Sequence record: MZ443771.1
DNA: 64,000 nucleotides
Strand: one strand, 5' to 3'
The position numbers and the translations under genes were made by a program. Positions 10,837 to 17,779 of this stretch are shown here, in pieces; positions within the stretch are counted from its first letter, which is position 1; every line of letters starts with the position of its first letter. Below the pieces are notes generated by a model. That model searched no databases, was not told where the DNA came from, and saw only the letters and a program-made list of their open reading frames with translations.

Positions 10837-12861
10837 TTAAGCAAATACTACGTTGGAAATGCTCAGGTAATCAAGATCGTTCGAGTCACCTCGGTCACCG
10901 CCACCTTGAACACGAAGCCAGATTTCTTGACCTGCAGGTATGTTCACATCAAACGTGAAATACTGATACACGCCACTACTGTTCCTCGGACTCTGGGCAG
11001 CACCTTCACCGGCAGTGCGCTCGTAGATATCAATTGTGTGCCAACCACCGTTCTTGCCGTCATATACCCACGCGAAAGTGATCTGCTTGATAGGTCGAGT
11101 GAAGAAGTTACCCCACTTGAACCAACCATTAACGCCACCCCAGATGTTCATGTAGTTTCCATCACGCGTCCATACTTGAGAAGCGTTAGGAGAACCTGTA
11201 CCACGACCACCAGTCTGCTCCCATGCGTTAGGCTGCCACGGAAGTTCGTCTGAATCAGGAGGCTGTGCGTTACCACCTTCAATCGTCACACAACGGTAAG
11301 GAACAGTGAAGTCACTCACGTTGATATGTGGCGGCTGAATAGGGCAGTACACGAAGTATGACCAATCACATCCGATAGGTGCAGTCGCACGAACTGTTAT
11401 GTTAGAGCGAAGCACATGCTCAGGGTATTTCCAAAATTCGAGTGTGCCAGTACGTCCCGCAGCAACGATAGAAGTATCGAGCACGTTCATGTCTTGGTCA
11501 AACACTTCGAACTTGGTATCAAACGAGTTCGCGGTACAAACAACAAGCTCGGCGCGAATGTCCGTCTGAGTTCCTAAAGCAAAATTATCTTCTGTGGTTG
11601 GATGACCGGCAGAGTAAACGCTGTAGCTCTGGCAAGGGTGCATGTATTCACGCGCACCACGTTCACCTGGGCAGTACAGGCTGTAGAAGCAACTCGCAAG
11701 TGAAGCAGCATTACCGAAGTCTTTGCTGACAACACGAACCATGATATCACACGCAACGTTTTGAGGGTCAAAGTAGAAGTACAAATAACCTTCGCCAGTA
11801 CGTGCATCGAGCGTTGTCGCTATGCGGCGTCCAGACTGATAGACCTCAATGAAATCGAATGTTTCCCACGAAGTGTAGTCGAGATACATCCAACCCGCTG
11901 TCCAACCGATGAAGTGGTAGTATTCGAAAGCGTTAGCATTCTGAATACGTTCAGCGATAGGCCAGACAGTTGCGTGACATGGTGCAGGGAAGATTGGGCT
12001 GCCGATGTAGTCTGGATGAATGACGTCAGGGAAATTGATAACGTCATACGCAGCCTGACTATCGAGCGCTAGCCCACCACGGTCAGACGGTGCTGCAAGA
12101 CGCGGCGGATAGACTTCTAAGCTCCATCCATAGCCCTGCGTTGTGCGCACACGAACCATGATACGCATATCAGCAGCGTCAGGGTCGAACTGGAATTTGA
12201 TACGCGAACGCCCAGCGAGCTTGCCGCACGTAGAAGCAACACGCACACCCATGTGATACACATCGACACTAGCACCAGCAGGCGCATACGATGCGATCAT
12301 GAGTTCAACGTAGCCCTCAATAGCAGGCATAGCGTAGTACGTTTCAGTGATGGTTGCACCACGTCCGTGTACAGACGCATAAGGCACGTTGGGGTTAGCA
12401 TACGTTCCTAGTCCTGCGCGAGAAGCAACACCAGTAGGGTCGTATGATTCGATGGCCTTGATACCGGGTCGATTGATAGATCTACCAGTAGGAGGAGCAA
12501 AAGAGTTGACGAGGCCGAAGCCAGTACGACCAGCATCAGGCAAGTCAAACCCTGCAGGATAGCCTTTAAGTATATCGTACTTCTCACGACCGCCACTCCC
12601 TATGCCATTGCCTGACCCTTTGGTTGTAGACGTCGGACCGCCACCACATGCACCAGTATCGAGATTAGAGCACGGGTCATCGTAAGTAGGGTCAAACGAG
12701 TCATCAATGTGATGCCAACGCTTGCCCCACTGATTACGCACACTGAATTTGTCTGGGCTTAATGGCGTCCAGTCTCCTTCATGTGTGCGTATGAACATGG
12801 GCGTGTCCACACAGTCATGCCAACCGTTATTCGCAGCGTTACGAACGCGAAAACGAGACAT
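10837..12861 (-). CDS. Structural protein with three tandem beta-sandwich repeats
   Basis: 674 aa. Three units of roughly 85-110 aa, each ending I(M/T)VR...W/F.Y.(P/C)P. Confidence 0.75.
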   Translation of the reverse strand: MSRFRVRNAANNGWHDCVDTPMFIRTHEGDWTPLSPDKFSVRNQWGKRWHHIDDSFDPTYDDPCSNLDTGACGGGPTSTTKGSGNGIGSGGREKYDILKGYPAGFDLPDAGRTGFGLVNSFAPPTGRSINRPGIKAIESYDPTGVASRAGLGTYANPNVPYASVHGRGATITETYYAMPAIEGYVELMIASYAPAGASVDVYHMGVRVASTCGKLAGRSRIKFQFDPDAADMRIMVRVRTTQGYGWSLEVYPPRLAAPSDRGGLALDSQAAYDVINFPDVIHPDYIGSPIFPAPCHATVWPIAERIQNANAFEYYHFIGWTAGWMYLDYTSWETFDFIEVYQSGRRIATTLDARTGEGYLYFYFDPQNVACDIMVRVVSKDFGNAASLASCFYSLYCPGERGAREYMHPCQSYSVYSAGHPTTEDNFALGTQTDIRAELVVCTANSFDTKFEVFDQDMNVLDTSIVAAGRTGTLEFWKYPEHVLRSNITVRATAPIGCDWSYFVYCPIQPPHINVSDFTVPYRCVTIEGGNAQPPDSDELPWQPNAWEQTGGRGTGSPNASQVWTRDGNYMNIWGGVNGWFKWGNFFTRPIKQITFAWVYDGKNGGWHTIDIYERTAGEGAAQSPRNSSGVYQYFTFDVNIPAGQEIWLRVQGGGDRGDSNDLDYLSISNVVFA

Positions 12862-12870
12862 GCTCTCTCC

Positions 12871-13362
12871 TTACGGTCTCACCCAGATTGCGCCGGGGCT
12901 AACCTCTTGGTCGATTGACGGGTCAGTGTCTTGCACGAACACCTGTACTGTACCGGGATTGCCTGGGGCGCCTGTAGGACCAGTAGGACCGGTCGGGCCA
13001 GCAGGACCACGATTGCCAACGTAACCCTGTTTACCGGGAGGACCGTCAGTGCCACGAGGGCCCGGACAACCGTCAGTGCCTCGACGACCATCAGTACCCA
13101 TAAGACCGTCGATACCATCACGACCAGAAGGACCAACGCCACCAGCAGGGCCGTAGCCGATACTATGAATCGTTGGCAGACCCGAGATTTGCAGCTTGCC
13201 GATGTTCGGGATATTGATAGCAAGCAGACCAGTCAGTGCGTCGAAAGAACCAGATAACTGGCTATCGTCTTCTGACGTGTCTACCGTAATGCCACCTTGA
13301 GTTGCTACTACAGGACCAGAGGCATTGGCCTTGACTAGCGATATATCAACTTTTTCTACCAC
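12871..13362 (-). CDS. Collagen-like protein (163 aa)
   Basis: G-X-Y run with GCPG. C-terminal IFVQ..DP....G.IWV motif. Confidence 0.85.
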
Positions 13363-13371
13363 GTTGCCTCC

Positions 13372-14004
13372 TTATGGCCATGTGATGTTTTGATCTTTCG
13401 TAGGGTCTACCCATATCGTTCCGGCAGCTACGTTCCCAGGGTTCGTAGCACTGACGATGATAGACAGACGACCAGCAGGACCGGCTGGGCCAGTAGGGCC
13501 TGTAGGACCTGTGCTGCCAGTTGCGCCTGTAGGACCTGTACCGCCACGAGGACCAGTAGGACCTGTAGGACCCATAGGACCTGTGCGACCATCTGGCCCC
13601 GTAGGACCAACAGGACCCGGTAGACCATCACGACCGTCAGGGCCCGGGAGACCTTGCTCACCATCAGGCCCTATGCCACCATCACACCCAGGTTCTCCGG
13701 GAGCACCGTCTCGGCCATCGCGACCGTCTTTACCGTCAGCACCTGTCTCACCTCTACCGCCTTGACGCCCTTCCGGGATATCAGAAGCAGTAGGGAAACC
13801 GCCAACTTTCACTGTCTGCCCGTTAGCAAACTTGAGCGTAAGAATACCCGAAGTAGCATCGAATGATGAATCAGCAGTGAGTTCTGACGGTACGTTTTCC
13901 TCAGATGGGTCTACTGTCAGAGTACCCAACGAAGCACGTACAGGAGTAGACGTAGACGAAGAACCTGCTTGAATGAGGCCAGTTTTTACTTTAATCAGAC
14001 CCAT
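13372..14004 (-). CDS. Collagen-like protein (210 aa)
   Basis: Long G-X-Y run with GPTG repeats. C-terminal IIVSATNPG...GTIWV motif. Confidence 0.85.
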
Positions 14005-15446
14005 TAGTTTTTCTCCGCTTTCGCAACGATATCCGTGTTGTGTACGAGCACATCACCCACGAAGTAACAGTCAAATGGATCGACGTCGATATCGACTGTC
14101 TGCACTTGCTCATCAACGCGGCGCATCTCGTAAACAGCTTGCGGTCCTTTGCGGCCTAAAACAGTTTGTCCAACAGTTACATCACGCGCAGGAACATAAC
14201 GCCATGCAATGCTATCGTAAATCAGAACAGGGTGTTCGTGTGTGAACTTCTGTCCATTGATAACATAGTAGTGGTCTTCTTGTCCGTGACGCAACGCAAC
14301 AACGTTCGCATTCACAGGCTTGCCTTTGAGACTAGGTGATGACCACTGACGGAAGTTCTTAGGCTGATTCGACATGCCCAGCAGACTCTCACCGACGCGA
14401 AGATCTTCGACTGCTTTAGGTCCTGTTAGCGTGTGAACTACAGAGCCATAAACGATACAGCCGGACGTCGATGTATTCAGCGGGTTGCGCACAACAACGG
14501 TCAAAGCAGAGCGCACTGTTACAGTAGGACGAGAGGTCTGCCCCATGTCAGTTACGACGCAGCTTATAGTGCCTTTGATTGTACGGTCAGCACCTAACCC
14601 TACACGCAGATAGAAGTTAACAATGCACGTCGAGGTTGTTGTAGCTTGAAGCGTCACACCCTCAGTAGTTGTAATAGACCATTGATACTTATACGGGCCT
14701 AAACCGCCACGAGCATTGACAGGCAGATACGCAAGCGATGTAAACACATCAGAGCCTTGCACTGTACGCTGACCTACCATGTACAGGCTTGACACTGACG
14801 CAGCAAGAGGTGTTATTGTTGGCAGAGGAGGTGCTGGCGTGACGTTGCTGGTGGGGTAGAGCCACACGAACACTCGACCGTCAGTAGGCTGAGTAGCAGA
14901 CTGAACAGCAGTAGTGATTGGCGCAGGACCCGTAGGACCTGTAGCACCCGCTATACAGCTTGGACCGTCATTGCCACGAGGACCGTCGATGCCAGTTGGC
15001 CCCGTTGGACCGTCTGGGCCTGTAGGACCAACAGGACCTTCACGTCCAGTATCGCCCGGAGGACCGTCTTCACCGTCACGTCCGGGATCACCGACAGGGC
15101 CTGTCTTGCCTCTGTTGCCGATCTTGCCTGGGCACCCATCAGGACCAGTAGGACCGTCTCGCCCATCACGACCATCTCTGCCTGGCGCACCGGGAGCGCC
15201 TCGACGCCCCGGCTTGCCAGTTCCAAACATAGAGATAGTCGGAAGTCCGGGAACGTTTATCACATCCCCGTTCTTCTTGATGAATACCAACACACCTGTC
15301 TTGCTGTTAAATCTTACGCTTGCGAGTTGCGTTAAAGTAGCAACGTCGGTCGACTCAAACTGCAAGCCCCCGTCAACGCCGACAACGGATTTACCTTCGT
15401 CGTTAGCAGTTGTTTCGATTTGCGAAAGTTTTAACTGTGTTGTCAT
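14004..15446 (-). CDS. Collagen-like fibre with Ig-like domain and C-terminal Hint (intein-like) domain
   Basis: G-X-Y run, then a beta domain, then C-IVYGS...THEHP...VLVHN-T. Confidence 0.85.
14037..14459 (-). other. Hint/mini-intein domain (141 aa) within the collagen fibre
   Basis: Cys1 (TGT at 14457-14459), block B TxxH (THEH), terminal His-Asn and +1 Thr. Confidence 0.8.
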
Positions 15447-17779
15447 TTCGGTTCAACCTTAATGCACAAGTTACCAGAGAGCGTTGACCCATAGCTTGTG
15501 ATCTGTGCGTTAGTCACACGAACCTTAGCGATGATATCAATGAAGCCCTGAGGTTGGTTCTCTTTCAGCACGGTGAACATCTGCGTAATGCTTGCGTTCG
15601 AATACGCAATAACTTCTGTCAGGCTAGTGTCAGAAGTAACAACGTTGAAGCCCGCGCTGCCAGTACCCTTCAGGCCACGACCGTATTCAGCTTCTGAGGT
15701 GCCGGGCACTTTGAACGACAGAACATATTCGATATGCTCTTTGCCGCTTGTCGGCGCGAACCCAGGGCCGAGTTGACACTGGAAGTCTGCGATACAGGTA
15801 AGCATCACACCTTTAGTGAACTCGATACGTTGAGTGATAATCAGTTCTTCCGAGTCATCAACGTTTTGCTGAATGTTGTACATGTTCTTCGGATCAGCTT
15901 CTTCGGCAAGCGCCTGAGTGTTACTGATCTTCAATTCAGGCCACGTACCTTCAATCTTAATGCCCTCACCCTGAATGATTTCAGGAGCAGCGATAGGCAC
16001 GTCGATAGGAGGCAGACCTTGACGTTTGAACATGTAGCCTGTAGGTGTAGGGATAGCGTCGATGATAACACCATCAACAGAACTATCTTTCGAACCTACT
16101 GCCATAACGTTCTCGAAGATTGTGATCTCAACGAGTGTGTTAGCAGGGATAGGCGAAGTCGTTTTCAACGCGCTGCCAGCAACCGTGAAGTCTTGCGTGT
16201 GCACCGTCAGACCACTCATGGACACAACGCAGTGCGCTTTGTTCAGAGGTGTAGTTGGCAGAGCAAATGTATCAGCATCATAAGGGAAGCGATACTGAGC
16301 AACACGAATACGAGTAGACCAGTTGGCGCGTTCTTCATAGCGAGCTACATAGAAAGTGTATTTCTGACCAGAAGGAATTGCTTCGGTCAATGTGACGCTG
16401 TTCCCGTTCGTGAGCTTGTACACGGTTGTAGGCTGCCACGTACTACCGACAACGCAGAACACCATGTCAACGCTTTCAATCGGCTTGTTACCGAGTTTGA
16501 ACTGAGCAGTCTGACCGTCACCAACACCTTCGTATGTTTCAAACAGGACAACGTGACCTTGCGACGGTTCAACACGGAACTGACGCATATCAAGCTGCAT
16601 ACGCTGTTCAGGGTAAGACGAAAGCAGAAGCTGATCGTCCACAACGCTATACGCAGTGCGCGGCTGGAGAATGCCTGACGTACCAAGCAGCAAGTCAGTT
16701 GAGCTATCGAGAATCTCGGACAGCGTGTAACGTAACTTGTCAGGAGTTGCTGTAGTCACAACAGAGCTAAACAGCATCTTGCCTGGTGGAACGAACAACG
16801 TTCCTGTAGTCTGACGAGTACCACCGGCAACAGGTCCCCAATACGGCTGCACGTCTTTACCGCGATAGAGCGCCCACGATTCAGGCACATCGTTATTCAG
16901 CGGCCACGGGATACCGGCACTTGGAGTTGTTGGGTTAGTGATTCTGCGCCACACAGCAATCGACGTCTGAGCAGACACAAACGGAATAGCATCGTCCATA
17001 TTGACGAGCTGACCATTCGTGTATTTGAAGTGACGACAAGCACCTGCGCCTGTTCCAGAGATTGTCTGGACGAGCACAACTTCATTCGCCTTCAACATCG
17101 AGAGGCTTGCGATCTTGAACGTGTTGGCATTGATGAATCCAGCAGAAGTAATCTGTCCGCTAAAGATTCGGTCATGCTCGCTGAATGCCCAGTAGTATGA
17201 GCCAGCACCGTAGCGATACGCAGTACCCGGAGAGCGTGTGCCGTCAGAGTTAACGTGCATATCAAGCACAGACACAGCGTTGAACACGTTGTCGCTCAAG
17301 CTAGGCAGATTCTGGAGAGTTGCCACGCTCGGAATCGAGGTGTAGTCTGCCATTTTCACAGCAAGAATCTTTTGGATGTCCTGCTGGATGTGTACAAGCA
17401 AGCTAACACGGCTGATAGAGTTCGGTACAGCGATGATAGGCTCTTCCAGAACAACGTGACCAAACGGTCTGTTGTCAGAGAGCATAATCAGTATCTCACC
17501 AACTCGTTTCAGCGCTTCACCCGCCAAATATTTGACTTTAATATCGAAGACAAATCGGGCACTGTTCTCGGTAAGAACCTGAACGTAAGACAATGCACCC
17601 GACGCAAGCTCGCTGCCAAGTAACTGCTCTGGAACCACAGACGGGTTAGAGCCAACAAAGTCACCTGCTTTGAATGCTACTGGAGCTATGGCAAGTCCAC
17701 CAGCATTCGCGTTCGCAACGGCCTGTTCTCCCTGAGGCGTTAATCGCAGCGCGTTAACGTAGATAGATTCAGTGGCCAT
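15443..17779 (-). CDS. Baseplate/tail-fibre attachment protein
   Basis: N-terminal T..G.......A.AGG...GD fibre-collar-like motif. Repeated G.GQT..F.L...P...V.V.G..Q....Y units. Confidence 0.65.
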   Translation of the reverse strand: MATESIYVNALRLTPQGEQAVANANAGGLAIAPVAFKAGDFVGSNPSVVPEQLLGSELASGALSYVQVLTENSARFVFDIKVKYLAGEALKRVGEILIMLSDNRPFGHVVLEEPIIAVPNSISRVSLLVHIQQDIQKILAVKMADYTSIPSVATLQNLPSLSDNVFNAVSVLDMHVNSDGTRSPGTAYRYGAGSYYWAFSEHDRIFSGQITSAGFINANTFKIASLSMLKANEVVLVQTISGTGAGACRHFKYTNGQLVNMDDAIPFVSAQTSIAVWRRITNPTTPSAGIPWPLNNDVPESWALYRGKDVQPYWGPVAGGTRQTTGTLFVPPGKMLFSSVVTTATPDKLRYTLSEILDSSTDLLLGTSGILQPRTAYSVVDDQLLLSSYPEQRMQLDMRQFRVEPSQGHVVLFETYEGVGDGQTAQFKLGNKPIESVDMVFCVVGSTWQPTTVYKLTNGNSVTLTEAIPSGQKYTFYVARYEERANWSTRIRVAQYRFPYDADTFALPTTPLNKAHCVVSMSGLTVHTQDFTVAGSALKTTSPIPANTLVEITIFENVMAVGSKDSSVDGVIIDAIPTPTGYMFKRQGLPPIDVPIAAPEIIQGEGIKIEGTWPELKISNTQALAEEADPKNMYNIQQNVDDSEELIITQRIEFTKGVMLTCIADFQCQLGPGFAPTSGKEHIEYVLSFKVPGTSEAEYGRGLKGTGSAGFNVVTSDTSLTEVIAYSNASITQMFTVLKENQPQGFIDIIAKVRVTNAQITSYGSTLSGNLCIKVEPK

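Follow-up and report, generated by a model that had tools for sequence, protein, structure and literature searches.

The 480-residue collagen-like tail-fibre protein encoded on the minus strand at 14004..15446 of a 64,000-nucleotide stretch of sequence record MZ443771.1 (the window, hereafter) ends in a Hint domain, which sequence and model comparisons place in the bacterial intein-like (BIL) branch of this fold, with BILs rather than inteins as its nearest relatives. We propose that the last 151 residues constitute a self-removing C-terminal module of the type A BIL kind, which the fibre precursor would carry only transiently, and we assign this reading a probability of roughly 0.6. The window is 100% identical to Erwinia phage pEa_SNUABM_20 (MZ443771.1), a 266-kb 'hairy' jumbo myovirus of the genus Alexandravirus that infects Erwinia amylovora (the taxonomy is that of the near-identical phage SNUABM_3). 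The parts of the gene are as follows.

14004..15446, minus strand: whole gene including the stop codon (from the list of open reading frames, ORFs), encoding the 480-aa collagen-like tail-fibre or virion structural protein precursor of 50.4 kDa
15219..15446, minus strand: N-terminal domain, aa 1-76 (PHROG matches; beta strands at 19-65 in the AlphaFold2 (AF2) model, at moderate predicted local distance difference test (pLDDT) values)
14922..15218, minus strand: collagen Gly-X-Y run, aa 77-175 (Pfam Collagen, E 1.4e-14, above threshold)
14481..14921, minus strand: middle region, aa 176-322, with a beta-sandwich at about aa 210-322 (AF2 full-length model)
14460..14480, minus strand: linker, aa 323-329, ending at Gly329, the -1 residue of the predicted N-terminal scissile bond (pLDDT below 50 at aa 324-327)
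14037..14459, minus strand: Hint domain, aa 330-470, 141 aa, 15.9 kDa (Pfam, phmmer, profile, AF2/Foldseek and conservation); Cys330 of block A has its codon at 14457-14459, Thr402 and His405 lie in the block B motif T-H-E-H-P, and His469-Asn470 of block G are encoded at 14037-14042
14007..14036, minus strand: 10-aa stub ('C-extein'), aa 471-480, with Thr471 at +1, Asp472, Lys476 and Lys479
14004-14006, minus strand: stop codon

The assignment of the C-terminal domain to the Hint fold, as judged by sequence and model comparison, is far beyond chance. A phmmer search of the Protein Data Bank (PDB) gave the BIL domain 2LWY as the top match, across the entire length (E 1.5e-5), and a profile of 52 relatives ranked 2LWY (5.5e-22) ahead of the Tetrahymena BIL2 (1.6e-17) and of the true inteins (1e-11 or weaker). 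The AF2 model of the Hint, made from the 52-relative alignment, has a pLDDT of 94.2 and a predicted template-modelling (TM) score of 0.88; in a Foldseek comparison with the PDB its best match is again 2LWY (E 1.8e-8, TM 0.73/0.80), followed by BIL2 (6Y75/6TMM), the mini-inteins and Hedgehog, and all 54 matches at E<=1e-3 are BILs, inteins or Hedgehog, with TM values of 0.6-0.8. The BFVD ranking is headed by three phage NCTB proteins, after which come proteins of uncultured phages annotated as Hint, PASTA or fibronectin-III proteins. With Pfam, the window protein alone matches PT-HINT (PF07591) at E values of about 2e-5 to 6e-5 (23.9-25.4 bits, against a gathering cut-off of 27.7) and Hint_2 at 18.8-23 bits (cut-off 28.4); a precomputed PF07591 match is present on several orthologues, and 51 of 86 relatives match this family at E<=1e-3, the best at 4.7e-47. 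The initial annotation, which had been made from the letters alone, placed a Hint with all of its catalytic residues at the distal end of a collagen fibre, and this is borne out by the Pfam Collagen match, the AF2 model and the phmmer, profile and Foldseek searches; the comparison with Hint and BIL families that it had suggested likewise supports the fold, with 2LWY best, albeit with Pfam scores below gathering. Every protein string that it quoted (the SG-Cys junction, T-H-E-H-P, His-Asn, the +1 Thr and the 10-aa tail) is present by position, and its interval of 14004-14459 comprises exactly the Hint, the stub and the stop codon.

An orthologue of the protein is present in about 50 sequenced jumbo phages of Erwinia, Dickeya and Yersinia, and also in Salmonella phage Sen-NF, Alcaligenes phage Afa-NA1 and phage NCTB. 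To collect more distant relatives of the Hint, the C-terminal 152 residues (Gly329, Hint and stub) were used as query in an exhaustive HMMER search against 1.84 billion cluster representatives, which returned 359 proteins at E<=1e-3; the family counts given here are taken from the best 150 of these 359 representatives. A full Hint with His-Asn is found in 147 of the best 150, and in 112 of these 147 it lies at the extreme C-terminus, followed by a stub of 1-20 aa (mostly 4-10). None of the 10 Hint-bearing orthologues in the alignment, which spans 30-85% identity, lacks Cys1, the Thr or His of block B, or the terminal His-Asn. Over the Hint-bearing orthologues in general the block B His is retained nearly throughout and the other residues without exception; among more distant relatives the His-Asn pair is invariant (86/86) and Cys, Thr and His are each conserved in at least 90%. 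Position 1 is Cys in 88 of 88 relatives, and the preceding residue is Gly in 61 of the 88, often the final one of a glycine run. The nonsynonymous to synonymous rate ratio (omega) of the Hint is 0.08-0.16 by the Nei-Gojobori method, a range equal to that of the rest of the protein. Purifying selection and the invariance of the catalytic residues together indicate that the Hint is maintained by selection in a catalytically complete state, and at the level of sequence this strong conservation argues that the precursor processes itself. The same observations bear on the alternative that no processing occurs and that the Hint stays in place as a distal knob, for example a binding domain, whose catalytic-looking residues are structural relics. 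Room for such a knob is left by the label 'virion structural protein' in RefSeq and PHROG (the 480-aa protein matches phrog_38766, E 1e-255), which is silent on which part of the protein is in the virion, but it is exactly the catalytic residues that are invariant across very divergent relatives, Cys1 is preceded by a flexible linker ending in Gly, and an orthologue without the Hint exists (see below); we consider a permanent knob very improbable.

The residue that follows the Hint behaves differently from those within it. The initial annotation had described what looked like a splicing-competent mini-intein, and class 1 splicing in the classical manner, in which transesterification by Thr471 and cyclisation of Asn470 would leave aa 1-329 peptide-bonded to the 10-aa tail, is favoured by the presence of all four canonical elements in this protein (Cys1, T-x-x-H, His-Asn and Thr at +1) and by the retention of the +1 Thr in the five closest genera sampled (Alexandravirus, Sasquatchvirus, Snuvirus, Rivsvirus and Yoloswagvirus). 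Elsewhere, however, the +1 residue is Val in the Yersinia phage lineage (Ala in one metagenomic relative there), Met in Sen-NF and Ala in NCTB, and it is Ser, Thr or Cys in only 12 of the 112 related C-terminal stubs, where Ala (26) and Lys (21) are commonest. The nearest relatives of the domain are moreover BILs and not inteins, the Hint-less orthologue has no tail to be joined, and part of the conservation of the tail is accounted for by a ribosome-binding site. Given that +1 is not conserved and that the orthologue of Dickeya phage JA29 lacks the stub, classical splicing is not the conserved function; Thr-mediated splicing is chemically possible in this particular phage, and we rate it overall as decidedly unlikely. 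What stands of the earlier interpretation is therefore the Hint with its catalytic residues, whose conservation argues for self-processing, while its classification as a splicing-competent mini-intein finds no support, as worded, in the BIL relationships, the variable +1 residue and the tail-less JA29 protein.

The Hint-less orthologue, a possibility that the initial annotation had raised, is found in the Dickeya phages of the genus Salmondvirus (JA29 and its relatives). It is 324 aa long, lies in identical synteny (locus L002, 4001-4975) and stops two residues past the beta-sandwich, with neither a Hint nor any equivalent of the stub. In a neighbour-joining tree built on the non-collagen N-extein, JA29 nests within the Hint-bearing lineages and Sen-NF and NCTB fall outside; the absence of the Hint is thus a secondary loss, and the Hint is accordingly dispensable in these phages. 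As the JA29 orthologue has no tail, there is no extein pair that would need to be rejoined, and it is evidently the N-extein that makes up the functional fibre once mature. The proposal that processing releases a folding chaperone is weakened by these data, though not rejected outright, because JA29 and two shorter collagen paralogues encoded next to the gene manage without a Hint; these same proteins speak against a need for the Hint in the trimerisation of collagen. The paralogues are located as follows.

13372..14004, minus strand: downstream paralogue, a 210-aa collagen-like tail-fibre protein without a Hint
12871..13362, minus strand: second downstream paralogue, a 163-aa collagen-like tail-fibre protein without a Hint

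Type A BILs end in His-Asn, lack a +1 nucleophile and give predominantly cleavage products, with ligation by the amine freed on Asn cyclisation occurring sometimes (PMC4031507). The phage Hint family fits this definition, having the His-Asn end and no conserved +1 nucleophile, and its membership of the BIL branch makes it most likely that the Hint cuts itself off the fibre instead of splicing in the classical way; among the possible outcomes cleavage is thus favoured. From the chemistry of the homologues we infer the following course for the fibre precursor. After translation the Hint would fold, and Cys330 would attack the carbonyl of Gly329 in an N-S acyl shift, assisted by Thr402 and His405 of block B, to give a thioester. 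Asn470, aided by His469, would then cyclise and cut the bond to the stub. Water, or else a stub amine (the alpha-amine or a Lys side chain), would resolve the thioester. The 15.9-kDa Hint would be released, leaving a mature fibre that ends at the tip of the beta-sandwich and has a mass of 33.5 kDa, or of 34.6 kDa with the stub transferred to it; this predicted end is the same place as the end of the Hint-less Salmondvirus orthologue.

Several points weigh against this proposal. The Hint is dispensable in the JA phages, the window protein scores slightly below the Pfam gathering thresholds of both PT-HINT and Hint_2, and the searchable literature, which includes reviews of BILs and of BUBL along with the 'hairy Myoviridae' papers, yielded nothing on Hint domains in phage fibres and no experimental evidence of processing. 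Hydrolytic cleavage at the N-terminal junction alone, moreover, needs neither an invariant His-Asn nor a Lys-bearing stub, and since plain hydrolysis leaves both of these unexplained the chemistry is probably richer than cleavage.

The lysine of the stub deserves consideration in this respect. Asp472 and Lys479 are at least 90% conserved in the alignment of the orthologue family, and Lys is present in 107 of the 112 stub tails of the clade, representatives that are related and so not fully independent, although the stubs share no other similarity. By comparison, same-length C-termini of the window's own ORFs would lead one to expect a mean of 31.7 Lys-containing stubs (maximum 49 in 2000 resamplings), and random windows in the same proteins 27.2. 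Lys makes up 13.7% of stub residues and 3.5% of those in the protein bodies, with no enrichment of Arg; seven of the eight one-residue stubs are Lys (one confirmed at the DNA level), and Lys also occupies +1 in 40 of 66 internal Hints from this clade. The position of the Lys inside the stub is variable.

Part of the stub is conserved for another reason. It contains the following element.

14013..14016, minus strand: GGAG Shine-Dalgarno site of the downstream collagen gene, within the codons of Ala477-Glu478

All eight of the closest genera have the codons GCG GAG AAR for Ala-Glu-Lys; even the third base of the Ala codon, a synonymous site, does not change, whereas a second Ala codon slightly further upstream in the stub varies freely among them. 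The GGAG stands 9-10 bases ahead of the ATG of the next gene, and the gene for the 210-aa paralogue overlaps the stop codon of the Hint gene in the sequence TAATG; in the close genera its ATG overlaps or abuts the stop. On this arrangement the 210-aa paralogue is predicted to be translationally coupled to the Hint gene. The conserved synonymous base, together with a depressed synonymous divergence (dS) in the stub, indicates that part of the conservation of the stub is that of the Shine-Dalgarno site. Ribosome-binding sites were rejected as the main cause of the stub Lys, as only about 28% of the C-termini of the window's own tightly packed ORFs contain Lys, the stubs show no excess of Arg or Gly, and stubs of a single residue consist of Lys.

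A ligation by amines after the manner of BIL2, encoded in the BUBL locus of Tetrahymena, would give the lysine a role: the epsilon-amine of a Lys, either of the stub or of another molecule of the virion or host surface, would capture the thioester at Gly329. With the stub Lys the product would be an isopeptide-branched 'splice' product ('isopeptide splicing'), formed after cyclisation of Asn470 frees the Hint; with another molecule, the tip of the fibre would become covalently tethered to a virion protein or to an amine of the host surface. BIL2, the second-best match of the Hint by both structure and profile, forms an isopeptide between a Lys epsilon-amine and a C-terminus (PMC8616854). The excess of Lys-bearing stubs over the 27-32 or so expected, without any excess of Arg, the Lys of most one-residue stubs and the frequent Lys at +1 of internal Hints all agree with this model, as does the usual Gly at -1, and it is the sole model to account for the joint conservation of Cys1, His-Asn and a Lys-bearing stub. 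It is nevertheless pure inference; the location of the Lys in the stub varies, the Lys could serve in Asn cyclisation, docking of the C-terminus or translation termination instead, and the Hint-less fibre of JA29 requires no adduct, and we hold amine ligation to be an unlikely candidate for the resolving step.

The wider clade appears, from the sequences recovered, to be mostly phage or metagenomic and to be carried on fibre or adhesin-like proteins. The N-terminal partners of the Hint include collagen (14/86), Ig, PASTA, BACON, Calx-beta, PKD, FN3 and a phage tail-fibre N-terminal domain, and for the handful of metagenomic relatives whose contexts were looked up these are phage-like, with tail modules. 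A tail module on a metagenomic phage contig of 64 kb, with tape-measure and tail genes upstream, closes with the gene for a 1009-aa protein that has a Hint at its C-terminus (L017, 10001-13030), and jumbo myoviruses are thus not the only phages to carry the Hint. The fibre cluster of NCTB recurs on a 182-kb scaffold from the Tara Oceans metagenome (locus L012), and in both of these three cluster genes have Hint-related sequence, namely the collagen protein, a free-standing Hint and a protein of 1304-1376 aa. The free-standing Hint gene (152-153 aa; L004, 4789-5250, and L012, 9534-9992) lies between collagen genes and is degenerate, its block B His being replaced and the context of its Cys1 unclear; it ends in His-Asn-Lys and two further residues. 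The 1304-1376-aa protein (L015, 6420-10334, minus strand, and L012, 11142-15272) ends in a Hint and a Lys-containing stub, and the 674-aa protein of the window (10837..12861, minus strand), which is 35% identical over 479 aa to its N-terminal part, has no Hint. The presence and absence of the module on different proteins of the cluster indicate that it has been gained and lost among them.

Tandem arrays of two to six Hints are seen in some metagenomic relatives (P0017, P0051, P0057, P0059, P0072 and P0075), joined head to tail through His-Asn-Lys, a few Gly and Cys. One tandem-Hint protein (L016, 4535-6430) is encoded on a 108-kb phage-like contig amid genes of nucleic-acid metabolism.

The patchy distribution of the module raises the question of whether the phage profits from the Hint at all. 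The chemistry could be as we propose and yet bring no benefit, the Hint spreading as a passenger among recombination-prone fibre genes because its self-removal is harmless, with selection maintaining only its ability to leave. The secondary loss in Salmondvirus, where the fibre cluster and the 'hairy' morphology stay, is consistent with this, as is the occurrence of the Hint on the collagen and 1304-1376-aa proteins of NCTB and L012 and its absence from the 674-aa homologue in the window. The JA and AD1 phages are both 'hairy', and Y3, AD1 and the JA phages have been described as 'hairy Myoviridae', with the tail-fibre genes of this cluster named as candidate hair proteins (PMC6143709); the morphology is thus found in Hint-bearing (AD1, Y3) as well as Hint-less (JA) phages. 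On the other side, there is no homing endonuclease in or beside the Hint, the domain is retained across about 30% to 100% identity with an omega of about 0.1, and the same highly specific arrangement of Gly-rich linker, Hint and Lys stub recurs on many adhesin-like partners unrelated to one another, which gives the impression of a functional module that has been recruited. The passenger account is in our view possible but improbable; the phage Hint may be a recruited maturation module, or a harmless passenger kept only able to remove itself. No endonuclease domain was found with Pfam in the 141-aa Hint, and the HNH genes of the region are not adjacent to the Hint gene. A homing or mobile intein was ruled out by the absence of an endonuclease in or beside the Hint.

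Comparison with known systems places the self-removing module closest to the type A BILs and PT-HINT domains (for example that of Clostridium thermocellum, 2LWY), which are the best match in both sequence and structure. Type A BILs share with it Cys1, the block B T-x-x-H, the terminal His-Asn and the lack of a conserved +1 nucleophile, and are likewise located in variable extracellular or surface proteins and not in housekeeping enzymes. They usually stand, however, between a large delivery or filament region and a released C-terminal domain, often a toxin, whereas the phage Hint is followed by only a Lys-containing stub of 1-20 aa and its host protein is a virion fibre. The Tetrahymena thermophila BIL2 (BUBL1; 6Y75/6TMM) shares Cys1 and the terminal Asn, and its Lys-amine nucleophile has a parallel in the conserved Lys after the Hint in the phage clade, but BIL2 has ubiquitin-like flanks, one of which it conjugates to substrates, while the phage Hint is flanked by a fibre and a 10-aa stub and is only about 15% identical. 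Hedgehog (Hog, 1AT0) has the same fold and the same general plan of a functional N-terminal product and a C-terminal Hint that removes itself through a thioester at Gly-Cys (predicted for the phage protein); it differs in having a sterol-recognition region after the Hint, no terminal His-Asn and cholesterol as the resolving nucleophile, in contrast to the invariant His-Asn and the 10 following residues of the phage Hint. Canonical mini-inteins (gp41-1, DnaB, RecA) share the fold and, in this protein, the four catalytic positions, but are weaker matches than the BILs. The phage Hint does not occupy a conserved site in a conserved protein, its clade lacks a conserved +1 nucleophile, the Hint-less allele lacks a C-extein, and there is no homing endonuclease. 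A purely functional analogy can be drawn with the Peptidase_S74 chaperones of tailspikes and fibres and with the procollagen C-propeptide, in which a C-terminal part of a trimeric fibrous protein is removed after assembly. These have no sequence or fold relation to Hint, and their chemistry, a Ser-Lys dyad or an external protease, differs from the thioester and Asn cyclisation of Hint; no Peptidase_S74 match was found in the window protein with Pfam at E<=1.

Hint domains are known to splice housekeeping enzymes (inteins), to lipidate a morphogen (Hedgehog) and to release toxins (PT-HINT/BIL). The clade described here represents a fourth setting, at the very end of fibre and adhesin-like proteins with only a short Lys-bearing stub to release, and one that recurs across many uncultured phages. 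If the processing that we propose is correct, phage fibres, among them the candidate 'hairs' of the hairy jumbo myoviruses (PMC6143709), would mature by a post-translational step, and the self-cleaving chaperone domains of tailspikes would have a non-homologous counterpart. Should the stub Lys be the nucleophile, the Hint would be of interest to protein engineering as a natural and compact module for ligating Gly to Lys, and capture by Lys would be a natural, widespread and ATP-independent protein-ligation chemistry in virion construction or adsorption. There is also a consequence for annotation: the current labels of such genes are 'hypothetical' or 'virion structural protein', and a mass of about 34 kDa, not 50 kDa, is probable for the mature product.

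Some of these genes have been recognized as intein-related before. A note in the phage Y3 record reads 'putative phage tail protein, contains intein domain', the products of phage NCTB include 'putative phage tail protein, contains intein domain', 'intein domain protein' and 'large intein domain protein', and in UniProt some relatives from uncultured phages are labelled as Hint proteins; the gene itself is annotated as a 'hypothetical protein' in pEa_SNUABM_20. Relative to the records and literature searched, and as far as our tools can tell, the BIL assignment, the non-conservation of +1 and the Hint-less allele are new, as are the size and phage association of the clade of extreme C-terminal Hints, the stub Lys and the ribosome-binding site in the stub.

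The gene sits in the tail and baseplate region, with a PAAR protein, a 1511-aa tail protein and a 779-aa protein encoded upstream; downstream, the two collagen paralogues are followed by the 674-aa protein. A hidden Markov model of the orthologue Hints, run against all six-frame ORFs of the window, matched only this one Hint. The three adjacent collagen-like proteins (163, 210 and 480 aa) each have an N-terminal domain and then Gly-X-Y repeats, the beta-sandwich and Hint being present only in the longest. The N-terminal domain of about 75 aa is common to the three, their PHROG matches falling on the same part of phrog_8745, and aa 1-76 are the probable virion-attachment end. The middle region has a weak Pfam match to the SprB repeat, and in the AF2 full-length model aa 210-322 are all-beta with pLDDT values of 80-94; the beta-sandwich would be the distal tip of the mature fibre. 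In Foldseek searches with the full-length model the Hint dominates the matches, and because those of the tip to Ig and carbohydrate-binding modules are weak and of low TM we refer to its fold only as a generic beta-sandwich.

Long Pro-Gly-rich ORFs on the plus strand, at 14914-15462, 13457-13765 and 12749-13024, lie opposite the collagen repeats; these are the expected mirror of the Gly-X-Y coding sequence and not genes. Within the collagen run every third Gly is invariant in both orthologue alignments, and two cysteines, Cys105 (15132-15134, minus strand) and Cys164 (14955-14957, minus strand), are invariant in 30 relatives down to 30% identity. Cys164 occupies a position where a Gly of the repeat is expected, and the two residues may form interchain disulfide knots.

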